This document shows positions 1,576 to 63,333 of a stretch of 64,000 nucleotides of DNA, piece by piece. The position numbers and the translations under genes are program-made. The notes under the pieces are model-generated. The model was not told where the DNA came from, searched no databases, and saw only the letters and a list, made by a program, of their open reading frames with translations. Location of the stretch: the sequence record OZ196212.1. One strand, written 5' to 3'. Each line of letters opens with the position of its first letter. Positions within the stretch are counted from its first letter, which is position 1.

Positions 1576-1611
1576 TCGGGTATTGACAGTAACATCGAAA
1601 TACCCGATAAT
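1576..1611 (+). promoter_or_regulatory. early promoter inside a 9-bp inverted repeat
   Basis: TTGACA-17-GATAAT; arms tcgggtatt 1576-1584 / aatacccga 1599-1607. Confidence 0.75.
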
Positions 1612-1656
1612 AAACACATCAAGACGACATAGACAACTACTTAAAGAGAGAACATT

Positions 1657-2475
1657 ATGACTATCACTAAAATTCAAATCGAAACTATCGCACAAGACTT
1701 AATGAGCGGCAACAACGCAATGGGACGCGACCTTATTTCTGAAGGTTGGACATTCGGTTGGTCAACTCGTAAAGCTGCACTTGGTGATTGTTCTTACCGT
1801 GACCGTCATATTCGTCTTTCTTCAGTGTTTCTAAATGCACGTACGCTAGATGAGCAAATCAACACAATCACACACGAAATGGCTCACGCTATCGCATGGA
1901 CTGATTTCAACGAGCGTGGTCACGGTGCAACTTGGAAACGTGTTCATCGTCAACTAGGTGGTACTGCGGAACGTTGTTCTTCAGTTTCTAACCCTGACGC
2001 TCTTCCTGATGCAAAATACACTGTGTTTTTCATCAACGCAAACGACGAAATCGAAGTTGTTCAAACTACAGACCGTCGCACTAAGAAATTTCAACCGCAA
2101 TACATCAAGTCAATCTACTTGCGTGGTCGTAAGTCTGAGACTGAAGGTAAAATTCGTTGTGTAGCAACTGCGACATTCAACGCAATCAAAGCTGACTTAG
2201 AAGCTTCTAAAGAGCCTAAAGCTGAAGTTGCACCTGCTCCAGTAGCTGCTCCTAAGAAAGAAGAGAAAGCAGCACCTGCACCTGCTAAGAAAGTAACTGC
2301 ACGTGGTGAAGCAGCTCGTGGTCAAATCGCTGCTAAAGCAATCGCAACGCTTGATTTCACTGACGTATCATTTGAACAACGTGGCAAATACAAAGACTGG
2401 TACATTCTTGCAACTGTTAAAGGCGAGAAATTCGAACAGCGTCTAGACAGCTTCAAAAAGAAAAACAACTTTTAA
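1657..2475 (+). CDS. SprT-like zinc metalloprotease
   Basis: LGDCSY..IRLS, HEMAH, RGHGATWK motifs; Pro/Ala/Lys linker. Confidence 0.85.
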   Translation: MTITKIQIETIAQDLMSGNNAMGRDLISEGWTFGWSTRKAALGDCSYRDRHIRLSSVFLNARTLDEQINTITHEMAHAIAWTDFNERGHGATWKRVHRQLGGTAERCSSVSNPDALPDAKYTVFFINANDEIEVVQTTDRRTKKFQPQYIKSIYLRGRKSETEGKIRCVATATFNAIKADLEASKEPKAEVAPAPVAAPKKEEKAAPAPAKKVTARGEAARGQIAAKAIATLDFTDVSFEQRGKYKDWYILATVKGEKFEQRLDSFKKKNNF

Positions 2476-2493
2476 GATTTACGAGTAGAGCAT

Positions 2494-2514
2494 AGCCCCG
2501 AAAGGGGCTTTTTT
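2494..2514 (+). terminator. intrinsic terminator
   Basis: agcccc-GAAA-ggggct plus T6. Confidence 0.9.
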
Positions 2515-2520
2515 AGGTTT

Positions 2521-2597
2521 GAGCGGAATTATTCCGTCTCATCTTAGTAGTATTAGTGATCTTCGAGATATTCGAGTAATTAGGGGTATTAGTTTAG
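2521..2597. repeat. 9-bp-periodic cassette, copy 1
   Basis: ATTCCGTCTCATCTTAGTAG at 2531-2550 (identical at 46932-46951); TT(A/C)G at 2544, 2553, 2562, 2571, 2580, 2589. Confidence 0.9.
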
Positions 2598-2621
2598 AAC
2601 CACCGCGAATCGTCGTATAAT
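2593..2621 (+). promoter_or_regulatory. sigma70-like promoter, GTTTA class
   Basis: TTTAGA-17-TATAAT. Confidence 0.65.
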
Positions 2622-2639
2622 ACACGTCGAGGTGATGAA

Positions 2640-2882
2640 ATGATAACAATCTACACAATTCCTAACTGTGACGGTTGCCGACATGCAATCGCACTCTGTA
2701 AGTTCAAGAAAATCCCTTTCGAAGAAATATCCTTAGATTCTCAGTCTAAAATCGATGCACTTCACCAACGTCTTGGCGGCAATCGAAACATTCGAGTCCC
2801 GTTAGCTGTTGACTCTGACGACACGTATATCGGTCACTTACCAGAGCTTAAACAGTACGTTGATAGCAAGCTGTATAAATAG
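2640..2882 (+). CDS. glutaredoxin
   Basis: YTIPNCDGC (CxxC), VP motif, 80 aa. Confidence 0.85.
   Translation: MITIYTIPNCDGCRHAIALCKFKKIPFEEISLDSQSKIDALHQRLGGNRNIRVPLAVDSDDTYIGHLPELKQYVDSKLYK
2874..2881 (+). promoter_or_regulatory. T4 late promoter TATAAATA
   Basis: perfect consensus upstream of gp24-like gene. Confidence 0.85.
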
Positions 2883-2939
2883 AAGAAACACGCAAATACT
2901 CTCCGCTGAAATGCGGCAATAAATTAAAGGAACGAACAA

Positions 2940-3839
2940 ATGACTGTATCTATCGGTAACGGTTTACCAGACATTGTTACAGTTCAGAAACGACTATATC
3001 CGCTTATCTTTACGGAAATTGTGTCTGAACAACCAACAAAACAGCCAATCGCGACTGCGTACGGCTTTAAAGCTATCAAAGACACTGACGATTCAAGTGG
3101 CTGGGAGCAGTGGAAATTCTCGCTTGACCGTTGGTCTGCGACTGCCGAAGCAACAAAGCTAAAAACTGATATCTCTCTTGAAGCAATTCAAGACATGGAA
3201 GCACTTGGGCTTGGCACTGACTTAATCGTTGACTCACTGGCTGATCAAGCGGCAGATGACATCAACACGAATATCATCACTGCACTGAACGCGATTTCAA
3301 CGCTTGGCACTGCGGTTAGCGTTAACTCAACAACTGGTAAATTCAACAAAGGTCGTGAGCTGTATGCTCTTGCACACGTCGAAGCTGCTAAACTTGAAAA
3401 AGAGACTGGTTGCCAGGGTTCGTACATCGTAGCGGGCGGAGAGACATTTGGTCTAATCGTTGGTTCTGGTATGGCGAAACGCATTGGTGAATCGAACGTT
3501 TATAAATTAGACTCTGGTCTTAAACTTGTTCATGACAAGTACGCAACGTCTGAATACTTCACGGTTGGCGTTAAGAAAGAAATGTCTGATTTCGAAATCT
3601 CAAGTCTGATCTTCAGCCCGTACAATTTCGATGGCGAAACTGGTGGCGGTATTGCTTATCAGCACGAAGGGCAAGACCCTAAGACATTCAACCCAATCTT
3701 CGCGATTATCGCACGATACGCACTGACAGTTGCACCGCTTGAATCTGATCAAACGGGCGCTAGTGATATCGATTGGGACGATCTTGGTGACAAGGCTAAC
3801 AGTTCTAAGCTATCAGCAACATTTGCCGTAACGCTATAG
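2940..3839 (+). CDS. 24: capsid vertex protein gp24-like, short form
   Basis: LIFTEIVSEQPTKQPIATAYGFK, KLKTDISLEAIQDMEA, ADDIN, RYAL match T4 gp24/gp23 blocks. Confidence 0.8.
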   Translation: MTVSIGNGLPDIVTVQKRLYPLIFTEIVSEQPTKQPIATAYGFKAIKDTDDSSGWEQWKFSLDRWSATAEATKLKTDISLEAIQDMEALGLGTDLIVDSLADQAADDINTNIITALNAISTLGTAVSVNSTTGKFNKGRELYALAHVEAAKLEKETGCQGSYIVAGGETFGLIVGSGMAKRIGESNVYKLDSGLKLVHDKYATSEYFTVGVKKEMSDFEISSLIFSPYNFDGETGGGIAYQHEGQDPKTFNPIFAIIARYALTVAPLESDQTGASDIDWDDLGDKANSSKLSATFAVTL

Positions 3840-3847
3840 GGTGACAC

Positions 3848-4369
3848 ATGAAAACACATTATGTAGATAATAAAGCTCTATACGCATCGATTTGCGAATG
3901 GAAAGAAGAAATGAAGAACGCTGAAGAAGGCGTTTTCGTGCCAGTCCCTGATTTTGTGGCAGTTAGTATCATGAAAATCAGCGAGAACTTGACCCGTCGT
4001 TACAACTTTAGCAATTACACGCAGCCGTGGAAAGAAGAAATGGTTGGCGATGCGATTGAGCATTGCTTACGCTACGTGAAGAACTTCGACACTGAGCGAT
4101 TCAAAAACCCACACGCGTATATCACTCGTATCTGTTTCAATGCATTCGTGCAGCGTATCAAGAAAGAACGCCAAGATACAGCGATTAAATATAAAGTATT
4201 CTTGTCTGATTCGTCAAACTACACCGTTGAGGGTGAAGACGTTGATTTCGACTTCATGCAGCAAATGCTAGAACGCGTGAACTCATTCGACGAATCTCGC
4301 AAATCAAACAAATCTGAATCTGCCCCTAGCAAGAAAGACGATTCGAACTTACAAAAATTTTACGATTAA
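3848..4369 (+). CDS. 55: late-transcription sigma factor gp55
   Basis: HYVDNK, YNFSNYTQPWKEEM, KNPHAYIT..CFNAFVQRIKKE. Confidence 0.97.
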   Translation: MKTHYVDNKALYASICEWKEEMKNAEEGVFVPVPDFVAVSIMKISENLTRRYNFSNYTQPWKEEMVGDAIEHCLRYVKNFDTERFKNPHAYITRICFNAFVQRIKKERQDTAIKYKVFLSDSSNYTVEGEDVDFDFMQQMLERVNSFDESRKSNKSESAPSKKDDSNLQKFYD

Positions 4370-12669: not shown

Positions 12670-13335
12670 ATGAAACTTAACAAATCTACAATTGAAGTGC
12701 TAAAAAACTTTGCTGGCATCAACAACGGCATGGTTATCCACGCGGGCACTCGTCTACGTACTCAAGATAACTTGAACAAGCAAATCGCTTATGCAGACAT
12801 CGAAGACACGTTCCCTGCTGAATTTGCAGTATACGATCTTGGTGAGTTTCTAAGCGCAATCAACTTGCTTGATAACGCTGAACTTGACTTCCAAGAAAAA
12901 TACGTTGTCGTTACTGGCGATGGTGGCACGAAACTGACGTTCCAATATGCAAACGCTGAGTTTGTAACTGAAGCACCAGAGAAAGTGAACTTCCCTGATG
13001 ATCTTACTGGCGGTGCTGAGTTTGACCTTAAAGGTGAAGATCTACAGCGCGTTAAGAAAGCATCGGCAACACTTGGTCTGTCTGATATCTGTGTACGCAC
13101 GACTGCGGGTTCAACTGCGGTTACTCTATCTGCGACTGACGCGCAAGGTTCGAGCAAGCACAAATTCGAAATCAACGTTGGTACTGCTGACGAGGCAATC
13201 GAATACGAGTTCTTCTTCAAATCTGAGCGACTAAACATCGTTGACCAAGACTACAAAGTTTCTATTCACCCAGCGGGTATTTCTCGCTTCTTGGGTCTAT
13301 CGCTTGAATACTTCATTGCTACTGAAGCACTGTAA
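12670..13335 (+). CDS. 45: sliding clamp gp45
   Basis: MKLNKSTIEVLKNFAGIN, FAVYDLGEFL, YFIATE. Confidence 0.95.
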   Translation: MKLNKSTIEVLKNFAGINNGMVIHAGTRLRTQDNLNKQIAYADIEDTFPAEFAVYDLGEFLSAINLLDNAELDFQEKYVVVTGDGGTKLTFQYANAEFVTEAPEKVNFPDDLTGGAEFDLKGEDLQRVKKASATLGLSDICVRTTAGSTAVTLSATDAQGSSKHKFEINVGTADEAIEYEFFFKSERLNIVDQDYKVSIHPAGISRFLGLSLEYFIATEAL

Positions 13336-22520: not shown

Positions 22521-23422
22521 TGAAAGTGATTGTAACAGTTGGTGTACCTGCTTCGGGTAAAACAACATGGGCAGAACAGTTCTGTGCAAAAACTGGCGCA
22601 GTGAACGTGAACCGTGATGACGCTCGTCAAGAGCTATTCGGTCCCTTCAAATGGGGTGAATACACGTTCAAAAAAGCTCAAGAAGAGCTTGTGACTAAAG
22701 TCAACAAAGACAAAGCATTGCTTGCACTGAGCAAAGGCAAGAGCGTCGTGATCTCTGATACGAACTTGAACCCTGAGTATCGTCAAGTGTGGAAGTCTAT
22801 CGCTGACCAATTTGATGCTGAATATGAAGAAAAGCTTTTTCATATCAACTTCGACGAAGCACATAAGCGCGATGAAGCACGTGAAATGACAGTTGGCAAG
22901 AAAATTCTAACTAACATGCTTCAAAACTACCATCGCATGAACCGCGACTTAATCATTGCACACTTCAAAGAGTTGCTTGAGAAGCAGTGGGCTATGTGTG
23001 ATCAGCTTGTTGTATTGAGCGACATCGATGGTACAGTGGCAGAAATGCATAAAGGCGTTAAAGGCAAGCGTTCACCATTTGAGTGGAAGCGTGTTGGTGA
23101 AGATACACCACGTAAAAACGTGCTGTACGCACTAGACGCATTAGCAAAAGACTACGCTGTGTGGTTCATGAGCGGTCGTGACGGTTCATGTGAGCCAGAG
23201 ACAGAAGCATGGTTACTTGAACATGCACCGTTCTACACGGGTCTTGTGATGCGTGCTCCAAGCGATTCACGCCCAGACTGGGTAATCAAACTAGAATTGA
23301 TGTACAATCTAGCACTACACGGTATCAAGCCGCTTGTTATGTTCGATGACCGTGATCAAGTAGTAAACACTTTGCGCGAAGTTGGCGTTGAAGTATGGCA
23401 AGTTCAACCAGGTAATTTTTAG
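22520..23422 (+). CDS. pseT: polynucleotide 5'-kinase / 3'-phosphatase
   Basis: GVPASGKT, RDD, SDTN, DIDGT, SGRD, FDDR. Confidence 0.97.
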   Translation: MKVIVTVGVPASGKTTWAEQFCAKTGAVNVNRDDARQELFGPFKWGEYTFKKAQEELVTKVNKDKALLALSKGKSVVISDTNLNPEYRQVWKSIADQFDAEYEEKLFHINFDEAHKRDEAREMTVGKKILTNMLQNYHRMNRDLIIAHFKELLEKQWAMCDQLVVLSDIDGTVAEMHKGVKGKRSPFEWKRVGEDTPRKNVLYALDALAKDYAVWFMSGRDGSCEPETEAWLLEHAPFYTGLVMRAPSDSRPDWVIKLELMYNLALHGIKPLVMFDDRDQVVNTLREVGVEVWQVQPGNF

Positions 23423-33078: not shown

Positions 33079-33251
33079 TTCTATTGTATTGCGAAGACGA
33101 AAATCAGTACATCGTACAGGTCGGGTGTGATGTGTGTATGCACCCGCGCAAAGATAAAGCAACTGACTTCAAGACTCGCGAGTGTGCGCAAGCGTACATT
33201 GACAAGTGGGAATTGTGGGAATTGTGGGAATGGGAGATTGTAGAATGTTGA
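33075..33251 (+). CDS. hypothetical protein (58 aa, WEL repeats)
   Basis: hand-translated; ends KWELWELWEWEIVEC. Confidence 0.6.
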   Translation: MILLYCEDENQYIVQVGCDVCMHPRKDKATDFKTRECAQAYIDKWELWELWEWEIVEC

Positions 33252-46321: not shown

Positions 46322-46879
46322 ATGGCATTTTTGAATAGAAAAGAATTGGATACAAGTGAGATAACCGAAGCTGATATGCAATACGCGATTGCAGTGCAGA
46401 GTGTATGGATCAACAAGCGATACACAGCGATGATACCGAACTGTTTCACCACAGTGACACACGACAACGAAGCTGACTTGTATGGCATTCGACCAAGTGG
46501 TCTATGTGATGAGATTGAAATCAAGGTATCGAAAGCTGATTTCCGTATCGATGAGAAGAAAACAGTCAAAGTATTAGACGAAGCCGCACCAACACGTTGG
46601 AATCGATACACAGACGTTCTCAAACGCACAGCATTGACCGATGGCAACATGAGCAACTACTTCTGGTATGCTTTCCCTAAAGGGCTTGTAGACCACGCAG
46701 ACGTTCCAGATTGGGCAGGCATCATTGAAGTAGATGGCTTACTGAATGCTCATGAAGTAAGAATGCCAAAGCGACTTCATGGTAGAAAGCTGTCAATCGA
46801 AGAACAACTCAAGCAAATCAAGAAGCTTGGTTACCGATTCTGGAATCTAGTCAAGAAGAACAAATCAAAAGCCCCTTAA
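46322..46879 (+). CDS. MmcB-like PD-(D/E)xK nuclease-fold protein
   Basis: EADLYGI..EIEIKVSKADF..NYFWYAFP. Confidence 0.8.
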   Translation: MAFLNRKELDTSEITEADMQYAIAVQSVWINKRYTAMIPNCFTTVTHDNEADLYGIRPSGLCDEIEIKVSKADFRIDEKKTVKVLDEAAPTRWNRYTDVLKRTALTDGNMSNYFWYAFPKGLVDHADVPDWAGIIEVDGLLNAHEVRMPKRLHGRKLSIEEQLKQIKKLGYRFWNLVKKNKSKAP

Positions 46880-46892: not shown

Positions 46893-46920
46893 AGGTCTAG
46901 CGTTAGCGAAAGGAAATGGT

Positions 46921-46998
46921 GAGCCGGAAAAATTCCGTCTCATCTTAGTAGAATTAGTAGTTTTAGTGAAGTTAGTGGTATTAGAGATATTAGAAGTG
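46921..46998. repeat. 9-bp-periodic cassette, copy 2
   Basis: 20-bp anchor 46932-46951; TTAG at 46945, 46954, 46963, 46972, 46981, 46990. Confidence 0.9.
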
Positions 46999-47005
46999 AA
47001 TTAAT

Positions 47006-47047
47006 TCAACAAATTTGTTGACAACTCTGAATACTTGATGCTAATAT
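47006..47047 (+). promoter_or_regulatory. early promoter with a 16-bp palindrome over -35
   Basis: TCAACAAATTTGTTGA 47006-47021; TTGACA-18-TAATAT. Confidence 0.7.
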
Positions 47048-52964: not shown

Positions 52965-53485
52965 TGAAACGAATACTAATAGCTGCGATGCTAGTTCTCG
53001 GACTAGCAGCGTGTGACAACAACACTGCAACGATACCGACTGCGTATCAAGAAGGCGTGCAGCCTATTGACAGTGAGTTTCCCGATAACTCTCTCGATGC
53101 TGGTGGTCTTGATTGGGCGCATGAAGCTGTAGAAGAGACTGATCATTCGTTTGATGAGTATGATGACAGTGATAGTGGATTTGATTGGGGAGACGCTGCG
53201 ATTGGTTTTGTAGCTGCTGAAGTGATTGACGATGTGTTTGATTCGAGTAGCAGCAAGACAACGACTAAAACAGTCTACGTGCCAGTGTCTGATACTAAGA
53301 GTACACAGCCAAAAGCAGTAACGACTAGCACGAAGTCTGTTGCACCGACGACTAAGAAAGTAGTTAAGCCAAAGGCGAAGACTAAACAATCTAAGCCAAA
53401 AGCGAAGAAGAAGAAATCTAAGTCTAAGAGCAAGCCACCTAAGAAGAAAAAGAAGAAAAAGAAAAAGAAGAAAAAGAAACGTTAA
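52964..53485 (+). CDS. lipoprotein with poly-lysine tail
   Basis: lipobox LAAC; ends K13-R. Confidence 0.8.
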   Translation: MKRILIAAMLVLGLAACDNNTATIPTAYQEGVQPIDSEFPDNSLDAGGLDWAHEAVEETDHSFDEYDDSDSGFDWGDAAIGFVAAEVIDDVFDSSSSKTTTKTVYVPVSDTKSTQPKAVTTSTKSVAPTTKKVVKPKAKTKQSKPKAKKKKSKSKSKPPKKKKKKKKKKKKKR

Positions 53486-62571: not shown

Positions 62572-63333
62572 ATGAGCAAACTTACATTCACTATGATGAC
62601 AAACGCAATCGTTGCACAGACAGACACGTTCAACGCACAAGACATTGCAAACCATGCAATCGATAACAACGCTGACATGTTCGAAGCGCGTCTTGCGAAG
62701 TGTGAAGGCGATGTTGCTGCAACAATCAAGCGAATCACTGCTCAAATATCAACTGACTTGCGTTTGAGTGTTCTCGATGGTGAGAAACTTCAAGTGTTAC
62801 TTGCTGATGAAGATCTTGAACTAGTCAAAGTTGGTAAAGGTAGATATCGCGCATCATCAATCGCATCCGATGCTGATTCAATTGAGTCTGATGATTCAAT
62901 TGAGTCTGATGAGTCTACTATCGAAACAGAAGAAGACACAGTTGAATTCAATCGCGCTGTTGTTATTCGCACTGCTGAACAACAAATGTCAAAAGCAGAC
63001 TTGAATCGAATCAAACAGCAAAAGAATGTTGGCGCTGATATCAACAACATCATGAAATGGAAGAACAGTGACTTAGCTCTTGAATGGGATCACGCTAAAG
63101 CATTAGCTGATGACGGCGAACACTCACCTAATAATGGTCAGCTTGTTTCTCGTCAGTATAACAGAACAAAGAACGCACGCTCTGAAAAGCGCAGAACATT
63201 TAAAAAGCAATGCGAATACATCATGCGCAATGTTGAATTCTACTTAGCTGATCGTTGGGTTGATGAAGAAGAATCTGAAATCATGATTCAAAACGTTAAA
63301 GCACGTCTTGCACTACTAGAAATCTACTACTAA
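62572..63333 (+). CDS. protein with C-terminal HNH-like nuclease motif
   Basis: EWDHAKALADDGEHSPNNGQLVSRQYNRTK. Confidence 0.65.
   Translation: MSKLTFTMMTNAIVAQTDTFNAQDIANHAIDNNADMFEARLAKCEGDVAATIKRITAQISTDLRLSVLDGEKLQVLLADEDLELVKVGKGRYRASSIASDADSIESDDSIESDESTIETEEDTVEFNRAVVIRTAEQQMSKADLNRIKQQKNVGADINNIMKWKNSDLALEWDHAKALADDGEHSPNNGQLVSRQYNRTKNARSEKRRTFKKQCEYIMRNVEFYLADRWVDEEESEIMIQNVKARLALLEIYY

Follow-up and report, generated by a model that had tools for sequence, protein, structure and literature searches.

What is the run of 9-bp repeats that lies in front of an nrdH-like gene in a T4-type Vibrio phage, and what might act on it? The DNA comes from Vibrio phage D527 (OZ196212.1, 254,106 bp), a KVP40-like T4-type phage. 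The window is the whole stretch of 64,000 nucleotides that we analyzed, and its coordinates become those of the D527 record on adding 62,000. By megablast, positions 1600-3900 of the window matched D527 at 100% identity, and the related phages matched included KVP40 at ~74%. The repeats are flanked by a 272-aa ORF (1657-2475) and an nrdH-like glutaredoxin gene (2640-2882), after which come the gene 24 and gene 55 homologues. An initial annotation of the locus had described a terminator, a 10-mer, a 20-mer, six repeat units and a promoter, and we found this layout as described in the sequence at 2494-2621 (Table 1). The 20-mer had been taken as an anchor. It is present, and a search of the window returned a second, exact occurrence (0 expected in shuffles), but the 10-mers at 2521-2530 and 2531-2540 form the two arms of an imperfect palindrome, so the supposed anchor is not a unit of its own. 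It combines the 3' arm of a hairpin, an ATC linker and the start of unit 1. The exact 9-bp period over six units was borne out: a six-unit TTMG pattern (at most one mismatch) occurred only at 2544 and 46945 in the window and in 0 of 100 shuffles. The second of these positions belongs to another full copy, which sits between an ORF at 46322-46879 and a promoter at 47018-47047. Other window repeats reported by TRF were GTGGGAATT (2.9 copies, 33206-33247), a lysine-codon-rich 27-bp plus 15-bp repeat (53365-53479) and an 18-bp unit with a 9-bp sub-period (2.2 copies, 62874-62916).

Table 1. Coordinates of the features described in the text; positions refer to the window unless another record is named.
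Feature	Position	Strand	Evidence or detail
Intrinsic terminator of the upstream gene (ORF 1657-2475)	2494..2515	+	6-bp G+C stem, then T run
Imperfect hairpin/palindrome, GAG-CGGAA / TTA loop / TTCCG-T-CTC	2521..2540	+	27-copy alignment, covariation, folding
Hairpin 5' arm, GAGCGGAATT	2521-2530	+	sequence
Hairpin 3' arm, ATTCCGTCTC	2531-2540	+	sequence
20-mer "anchor"	2531-2550	+	exact second occurrence at 46932-46951
Linker ATC, hairpin to array	2541..2543	+	invariant in alignment
Six contiguous 9-bp units, TTAG core; units 3 and 4 TTCG in the D527 lineage	2544..2597	+	pattern search, alignment
Sigma-70/T4-early-like promoter of the nrdH-like gene, TTTAGA-17-TATAAT; -35 overlaps unit 6	2593..2621	+	
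Annotated 33-aa CDS VPHD527_0095 over the cassette, judged spurious	2519..2620	+	GenBank
Upstream box of the second window copy, AGCG-N2-AGCGA	46899..46909	+	
Second full copy	46921..46998	+	21-nt hairpin 46921-46941, ATC, six TTAG units 46945-46998
CDS over cassettes, D527 record coordinates	22539-22700, 64519-64620, 160540-160629, 221928-222047, 247879-248052		second = window 2519-2620
C-GAA-G mini-hairpin element of the islands	L261:9484-9541, L265:9436-9492, L266:9195-9251		

GenBank places a 33-aa CDS over the repeats, at a spot where the initial annotation had seen no credible ORF. We rejected this CDS because its constrained positions lack synonymous variation. The would-be codons include TTA but never TTG or CTN, and AGT, AGA and AGG but never AGC; fixed bases occupy would-be wobble positions. 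A one-base difference in hairpin length among the copies moves the upstream frame, so that the copies differ in frame. The absence of a credible ORF therefore holds despite the database entry. At least five of the six D527 copies are annotated as small hypothetical CDS in OZ196212.1, and these calls are almost certainly false.

A search for the TTAG period in the full genome and in relatives, which had been suggested as a check, revealed a fixed family with five or six copies per phage genome. Each member, hereafter called the cassette, is a non-coding element of ~80 bases in which a small hairpin is followed by six 9-base TTAG repeats. There are exactly six cassettes in D527, exactly six in KVP40, six in VH7D and five in the outgroup F86, where the copy at the lipoprotein gene is missing and leaves a 90-kb gap. 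With blastn, about 50 KVP40-like phages each showed matches at six places in the genome. We built a covariance model on 27 copies and ran it over 760 kb; every copy scored 74-105 bits and nothing else exceeded 15.5 bits, leaving no extra or degenerate copies. The nrdH copy of D527 had the lowest score of the six in its genome (78.9 bits), and the second window copy scored 95.9 bits. The intergenic sites are syntenic: between gene 35 and uvsY, before nrdH, after the KVP40.0135 homologue, before the lipoprotein gene, between gene 3 and gene 1, and between gene 12 and wac. This set of sites is fixed across phages whose genes have diverged by ~25%. The orientation of the cassette is always that of the local genes (6/6 in D527, 6/6 in KVP40 and 5/5 in F86). 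Gaps between copies in D527 and KVP40 measure 26-61 kb, which is more even than chance in a minimum-gap test with six random points on a circle (P=0.009 and 0.006, respectively), although the two genomes are syntenic and the spacing result counts as one observation. GC skew did not switch at the copies. Anatomy, copy number, synteny, orientation and spacing were all read directly from the genomes.

We aligned 27 copies, comprising 162 units and 1458 array bases, to examine the parts of the cassette. The hairpin of the family is 21 nt long, with a core stem of CGGAA/TTCCG and an AAA loop; the nrdH copy of D527 is 1 nt shorter. The sequence TCATC, formed by TC and the ATC linker (columns 20-24), is invariant in all 27 copies. 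Stem pairs 6-16 and 7-15 switch from G-C to C-G in 3-4 of the 27, and CCCAA/TTGGG replaces CGGAA/TTCCG in three. In the nrdH copy of F86, all five core pairs are closed by way of T.G and G.T, and the stem folds on the sense strand only. Across the alignment, 84.8% of stem cells are paired, against 79.8% in shuffles (matched by 0 of 500) and 34-53% when the partner was slid. Changes on both sides of the stem account for eight cells, a number that 0 of 500 shuffles reached. The stem is genuine and is maintained through compensatory changes, a covariation visible in the alignment itself. RNAalifold kept the hairpin alone in its consensus and left the array unpaired; single copies can pair UUAG with UUAG through wobble pairs, but the consensus fold of the array has no structure. 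Most copies also have an upstream box, AGCG-N1-2-AGCG with the family form AGCGAAGCGA, located 10-45 nt 5' of the hairpin; the nrdH copies, that of D527 included, lack this box. Searched for separately in D527, the hairpin occurs within cassettes only, and the exact AGCGAAGCG box occurs three times, twice in cassettes. No covariance model of Rfam 15 matched the cassette, even at E values up to 10.

The initial annotation had held that only a TT(A/C)G phase is conserved in the units, which proved too narrow. Positions 1-4 read TTAG in 157-162 of the 162 units, the remainder follows the preferences T>A, R, R, W and A, and all nine positions carry information, for a unit consensus of TTAG-T-R-R-W-A. 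Unit-specific identity persists between copies and species (unit 3, for example, is mostly TTAGTGAAG), and the unit count is always exactly six. The 54-bp array is 75% A+T across the family, compared with 56% for the genome. C is nearly absent, at 21 of 1458 bases (1.4%) against 21% genome-wide, and the G:C ratio at variable positions is 185:18, an asymmetry between the strands that was counted directly. TTCG units occur only in D527, K566 and K567, and all six units are TTAG in the sister clade (D482 and its relatives). The two groups differ by five substitutions within 14 bp, with otherwise identical flanks. By this comparison, the nrdH copy of D527 is evidently a derived variant and TTAG is the canonical core. 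The clustered substitutions look like a conversion patch or a selected change. The patch (window 2553-2579) creates a GATC, two TCGA sites and a perfect local 9-bp TTCGAG duplication, and the 380 bp of flank around it are otherwise nearly identical to the D482 clade.

We compared the surroundings of the copies. An intrinsic terminator precedes four of the six D527 cassettes but not the KVP40 0135 copy or the lipoprotein copy. A T4-early-like (sigma-70-like) promoter lies directly downstream of five of the six, and unit 6 overlaps its -35 in two. The distance from the end of the array to the -10 depends on the copy (~19, 21, 32, 44 and 45 nt). The lipoprotein copy has neither terminator nor promoter, and the gene that follows takes its GGAG and ATG from units 5-6. 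At the KVP40 0135 copy, the hairpin overlaps the stop codon of that gene. These two copies are certainly transcribed, because one holds the Shine-Dalgarno sequence and start codon of a gene and the other contains a stop codon in its hairpin. Since the promoter distance is variable and the flanks are absent at some copies, the terminator and promoter are neighbors of the element and not parts of it.

We searched for the cassette outside the phages. An IMG/VR scan with the specific pattern returned only KVP40 and VH7D, and looser periodic patterns returned only unrelated tandem repeats. A plasmid collection held no match to the cassette. A bacterial collection with one genome per species gave two chance matches only, because its representative genomes lack the island described here. 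In a metagenome scan, we found the cassette at 94% identity over 84 bp to a D527 copy on contigs otherwise unlike any phage; the matches on L246 and L249 were discarded as chance matches. The complete element is a 13-15 kb island in the M32 carboxypeptidase gene of Vibrio and Photobacterium chromosomes (L254, a JGI 3300000888 contig, and L261-L270; for example, L261:4400-16200). Its genes code for a large serine recombinase, an Xre-type regulator, a small resolvase, backbone proteins and a protein of 325-349 aa, and a variable cargo slot holds Thoeris, restriction-modification or GmrSD systems. Homologues of the 345-aa island protein are found in V. alginolyticus, V. parahaemolyticus, V. cholerae, V. 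fluvialis, V. vulnificus, V. cyclitrophicus, V. splendidus, V. lentus and Photobacterium. The L261 insert is flanked by a 22-bp direct repeat. Two backbone proteins (L254:3275-3838 and L254:14132-14365) showed weak matches to PHROGs 16422 and 15749, families of unknown function with full-length matches to KVP40.0372 and KVP40.0297.

A 1.3-kb non-coding region of the island contains TATAAATA promoters of the T4 late type, clustered mini-hairpins with GAA loops, a tract rich in pyrimidines and iterons that are 11, 22 or 44 bp apart, in helical phase. The sequence of the iterons varies together with the N-terminal part of the neighboring 345-aa-type protein, and iterons beside such a gene have the architecture of an origin with a predicted initiator. 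Because the 345-aa protein has no match in Pfam or PHROG, and its AlphaFold model (pLDDT 69.5) no fold match in the PDB, the initiator label comes solely from this covariation. All island types have, beside the iterons, an element of ~58 nt made of consecutive C-GAA-G mini-hairpins (AGCGAAGCGA, GCCGAAGGC and GGGCGAAGCCC). GCGAAGC is an unusually stable DNA mini-hairpin. The AGCGAAGCG box of the island element also heads most phage cassettes.

Exactly one cassette is present in nine of 11 related islands, scoring 78-101 bits and located in the 1.3-kb iteron region. It lies 750-1130 bp upstream of the 325-349-aa gene and is co-oriented with it, and it occurs independently of the iteron or Rep-like type. 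The cassette-bearing islands, identified directly in chromosomes and contigs, span six or more species. In several of them the hairpin has decayed, with CCGCATCATC and the array intact. The island copy sits between divergent late-type promoters, and no consensus promoter reads into it. The leaders in L263 and L270 match the leader of the D527 wac copy, and the island copies resemble different phage copies. The two islands that have no cassette kept the late-type promoter and encode VapE-like (helicase-primase) and AAA proteins. VapE is found in no cassette-bearing island (9/0 against 0/2, Fisher 0.018), an anticorrelation that is only suggestive since the 11 islands are related. Clamps resembling gp45 are encoded in three islands, and in a comparison with all phages they match those of KVP40-like phages best; one island has a gene for a gp44-like clamp loader. 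The gp45-like proteins are 39-58% identical to the phage clamp (window 12670-13332 compared with L254:12208-13245, L264:13560-14243 and L268:11476-12225) and could act as decoys or hijacking factors. One clamp homologue has an insertion of ~125 aa between its two halves. Overall, the islands look like satellites or parasites, or like defence islands, tuned to KVP40-like T4-type phages. The closest comparison is with satellites that copy cis sites of their helper, such as P4 with its cos and late promoters and PLE of Vibrio cholerae; the islands are much like PLE (PMC9410903) in combining a large serine recombinase, an iteron origin with an initiator-like gene, helper-type late promoters and defence cargo. 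Unlike in P4 and PLE, the element found in both island and phage is not a known cos or pac site and not an activator site, a T4-type phage would be the helper, and satellite status is something we infer.

Five or six evenly spaced copies in each KVP40-like phage examined, together with one in parasite-like islands, make it very probable that the cassette is a site on which phage machinery acts, most likely in DNA replication. Our preferred interpretation, held tentatively, is that the cassette may be a strand-specific loading site for the phage replisome or for a polymerising protein, an origin-like unwinding element that satellite-like islands would have copied. We favor a replication or replisome role because of the even spacing, the position at uvsY, and an A+T-rich, asymmetric array next to a structured nucleation point, and because the cassette is placed in the islands' origin region and exchanged there with a helicase-primase gene. 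Several points count against an origin-like site: GC skew shows no switch, F86 has lost a copy, island hairpins can be degenerate, the islands have iterons of their own, and two copies are transcribed. Satellites more usually take packaging or promoter signals than origins from their helper, which also counts against it.

The cassette would work when the DNA is opened. Its 54-base array, poor in C and 75% A+T, would be easily unwound and would present a structure-free single strand. The hairpin and the invariant TCATC would then nucleate a phage factor that reads six 9-base steps, and this predicted factor would recruit the T4-type replisome (helicase, primase and clamp). Given the co-orientation with genes and the pairing on the sense strand, the top strand would be the one read in the open duplex. 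The five or six even copies would represent defined initiation or replisome-loading sites that fire in the direction of transcription, and phage-dependent Vibrio islands would keep one copy beside their own iteron origin to capture the helper replisome. In this scheme, we infer that the cassette acts as a single strand, that it has a protein partner and that it functions in replication.

The initial annotation had also suggested an origin or a loading site for a protein with a 9-nt step, by analogy with promoter-primed R-loops of T4 and with DnaA-trio elements. The fixed copies and the islands support a non-coding, cis-acting cassette that is probably a loading site with a 9-base step, but both analogies fell away. 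T4 origins share no motif, ori(uvsY) is the same as oriF, and in oriF and oriG a promoter fires into an unwinding element (PMC3016281). The KVP40-like sites resemble oriF (uvsY) and oriG (34) in being multi-copy, in pairing an A+T-rich stretch with a promoter and in being co-directional with transcription, and one cassette is located at the uvsY promoter region. The A+T-rich stretch of ~50 bp typical of these origins has its counterpart in the array (54 bp, 75%), but no promoter runs into a downstream element. Beside the cassette, the neighboring promoter is downstream of the array and directs transcription away from it. Four of the six copies come after a terminator, so it is not evident how a nearby promoter would give rise to an R-loop. 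The cassette also differs from oriF and oriG in being one sequence family at all sites, in its hairpin and exact 9-bp repeats, and in having the array upstream of the promoter; with the promoter on the wrong side, it is not built like these origins (PMC3016281). T4 oriE contains 12-nt repeats at one locus, and their role is unknown (PMC3016281). Like oriE and plasmid iteron origins, the cassette has evenly spaced direct repeats in a non-coding region of origin type. Plasmid iterons, however, are 17-22 bp long, in helical phase and beside a rep gene, as are the islands' own iterons, whereas the cassette consists of contiguous 9-mers.

The cassette is reminiscent of DnaA-trio elements in having a strand-specific array rich in TAG, which a polymerising protein is proposed to read in single-stranded form. 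Its first five triplets are NAN, mostly TAG; of 17 triplets, a mean of 12.2 fit NAN and 7.8 fit TA(G/A), and runs of at least three consecutive NAN trios are present. In contrast to the trio system, only every third triplet is fixed, which makes the step nine and not three. The DnaA-trio system needs a DnaA box within about 16 bp (PMC8287927). No DnaA box (up to two mismatches) was found within -48 to +58 in any of the 27 copies, so the cassette is not a DnaA-trio module.

A role in RNA is plausible but, in our judgment, less likely than one in replication. In read-through or operon transcripts, the sense-strand hairpin and six unstructured UUAG repeats could be bound by a ring-shaped or polymerising RNA-binding protein that controls translation, processing or termination at the boundaries of transcription units. 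The orientation is always that of transcription, the wobble pairs can form only on the sense strand, the array has little C and stays unpaired in the consensus fold, and the unit count is fixed at six. Two copies are necessarily transcribed, through the lipoprotein GGAG/ATG and the KVP40 0135 stop codon. Precedents exist in TRAP, which binds 11 (G/U)AG repeats (PMC3064811), and HutP, which binds six UAG repeats (PMC2425495). As in those systems, a repeated (U/G)AG at fixed spacing in unstructured RNA would match the number of subunits in a ring (six for HutP), and the array can overlap a ribosome-binding site. TRAP and HutP arrays have spacers of 2-4 nt and occur in 5' leaders (PMC3064811, PMC2425495), whereas the cassette has a period of nine and most copies come after terminators. 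Four of six copies lie between a strong terminator and the next promoter and are expected to be poorly transcribed, and the island copy between divergent late-type promoters is entered by no consensus promoter. Even spacing around the genome would be unexpected for gene-specific RNA control, and the Rfam search returned no family.

We consider it less likely again that the cassette is an operator array recognized as duplex DNA. A phage or host protein would coat six head-to-tail 9-bp sites to activate, repress or insulate the adjacent T4-early-like promoter, for example in place of a MotA-type middle mode, and the islands would use the array to sense infection. MetJ, omega and ParR-type proteins recognize short direct repeats that follow one another without gaps at a fixed period, and satellites such as P4 have activator sites in common with their helper. 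Five of six copies have a sigma-70-like promoter directly downstream, with the -35 overlapped by unit 6 in two, and information is present at 9/9 unit positions. The variable distance from array to -10 (~19 to 45 nt) fits this proposal poorly, as do the lipoprotein copy, which has no promoter, and the presence of only six sites when promoters number in the dozens. It would leave the even spacing and the stem covariation unexplained, and recognition of a duplex needs no one-strand excess of G over C.

An explanation based on packaging is improbable. The small terminase subunit would recognize the cassettes as pac-like sites that point in the direction of transcription, and the island copy would direct packaging into helper capsids. 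A cos or pac site is the cis element most often common to satellites and helpers, the single copy per island has a defined orientation, and periodic repeats fit a ring-shaped TerS. However, packaging in T4-type phages essentially does not depend on sequence, and it would be unusual for a genome to have six sites. The cassette is missing from two islands that have the same late-type promoters, and packaging does not explain a wobble hairpin on the sense strand.

We give least credence to a selfish or recombinational module without a dedicated function, a mobile intergenic cassette like the PeSLs described for the nt-1/KVP40 pair (PMC4122927), kept up by gene conversion among copies and traded between phages and islands: the position between terminators and promoters (PMC4122927), the likeness of copies within a genome, the island copies that resemble different phage copies (the L263/L270 leader being that of D527 wac), the 22-bp direct repeat around the L261 insert and the clustered substitutions in the D527 copy fit it, but the number and positions of cassettes are fixed across phages ~25% apart in their genes, the TTAG phase, unit count and TCATC are invariant while variable positions drift, and no extra or degenerate copies are found in the phages even as the element persists in islands of six or more species. 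PeSLs are intergenic composites of a stem-loop and an early-type promoter, and the flanks of the cassette fit this description. They are numerous, lie in hyperplastic regions and include a promoter and terminator; the core of the cassette is distinct and is limited to 5-6 syntenic sites. The operator, packaging and selfish-module explanations are each less likely than the replication role or the RNA role.

A replisome-loading site can be developed into a more specific scheme, about which we are doubtful. KVP40-like phages, unlike T4, would mark their genome with a dedicated, sequence-defined loading site that is read as a single strand. A phage protein, acting as a six-step polymer or hexamer, would start replication or clamp loading there, and a widespread family of Vibrio islands would have pirated the site in place of a helicase-primase of their own. 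The element is absent from the nt-1/KVP40 PeSL, phi-pp2, phi-Grn1/St2 and Schizotequatrovirus papers and from a review of T4 relatives; a prior mention in the 2003 KVP40 genome paper is possible.

Recognition of the cassette corrects the spurious small CDS annotations that cover it, up to six per genome. Origin choice in T4-type phages is listed among unsolved problems (PMC3016281), and a genus with one short, conserved, multi-copy element makes the question of where these phages start replication directly testable. The element also ties the broad-host-range KVP40-like phages to a previously unrecognized family of Vibrio and Photobacterium islands with defence and clamp or clamp-loader genes. 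It thus provides an entry point to what may be a satellite-helper system of T4-type phages and to the cis signal that such a system may exploit.
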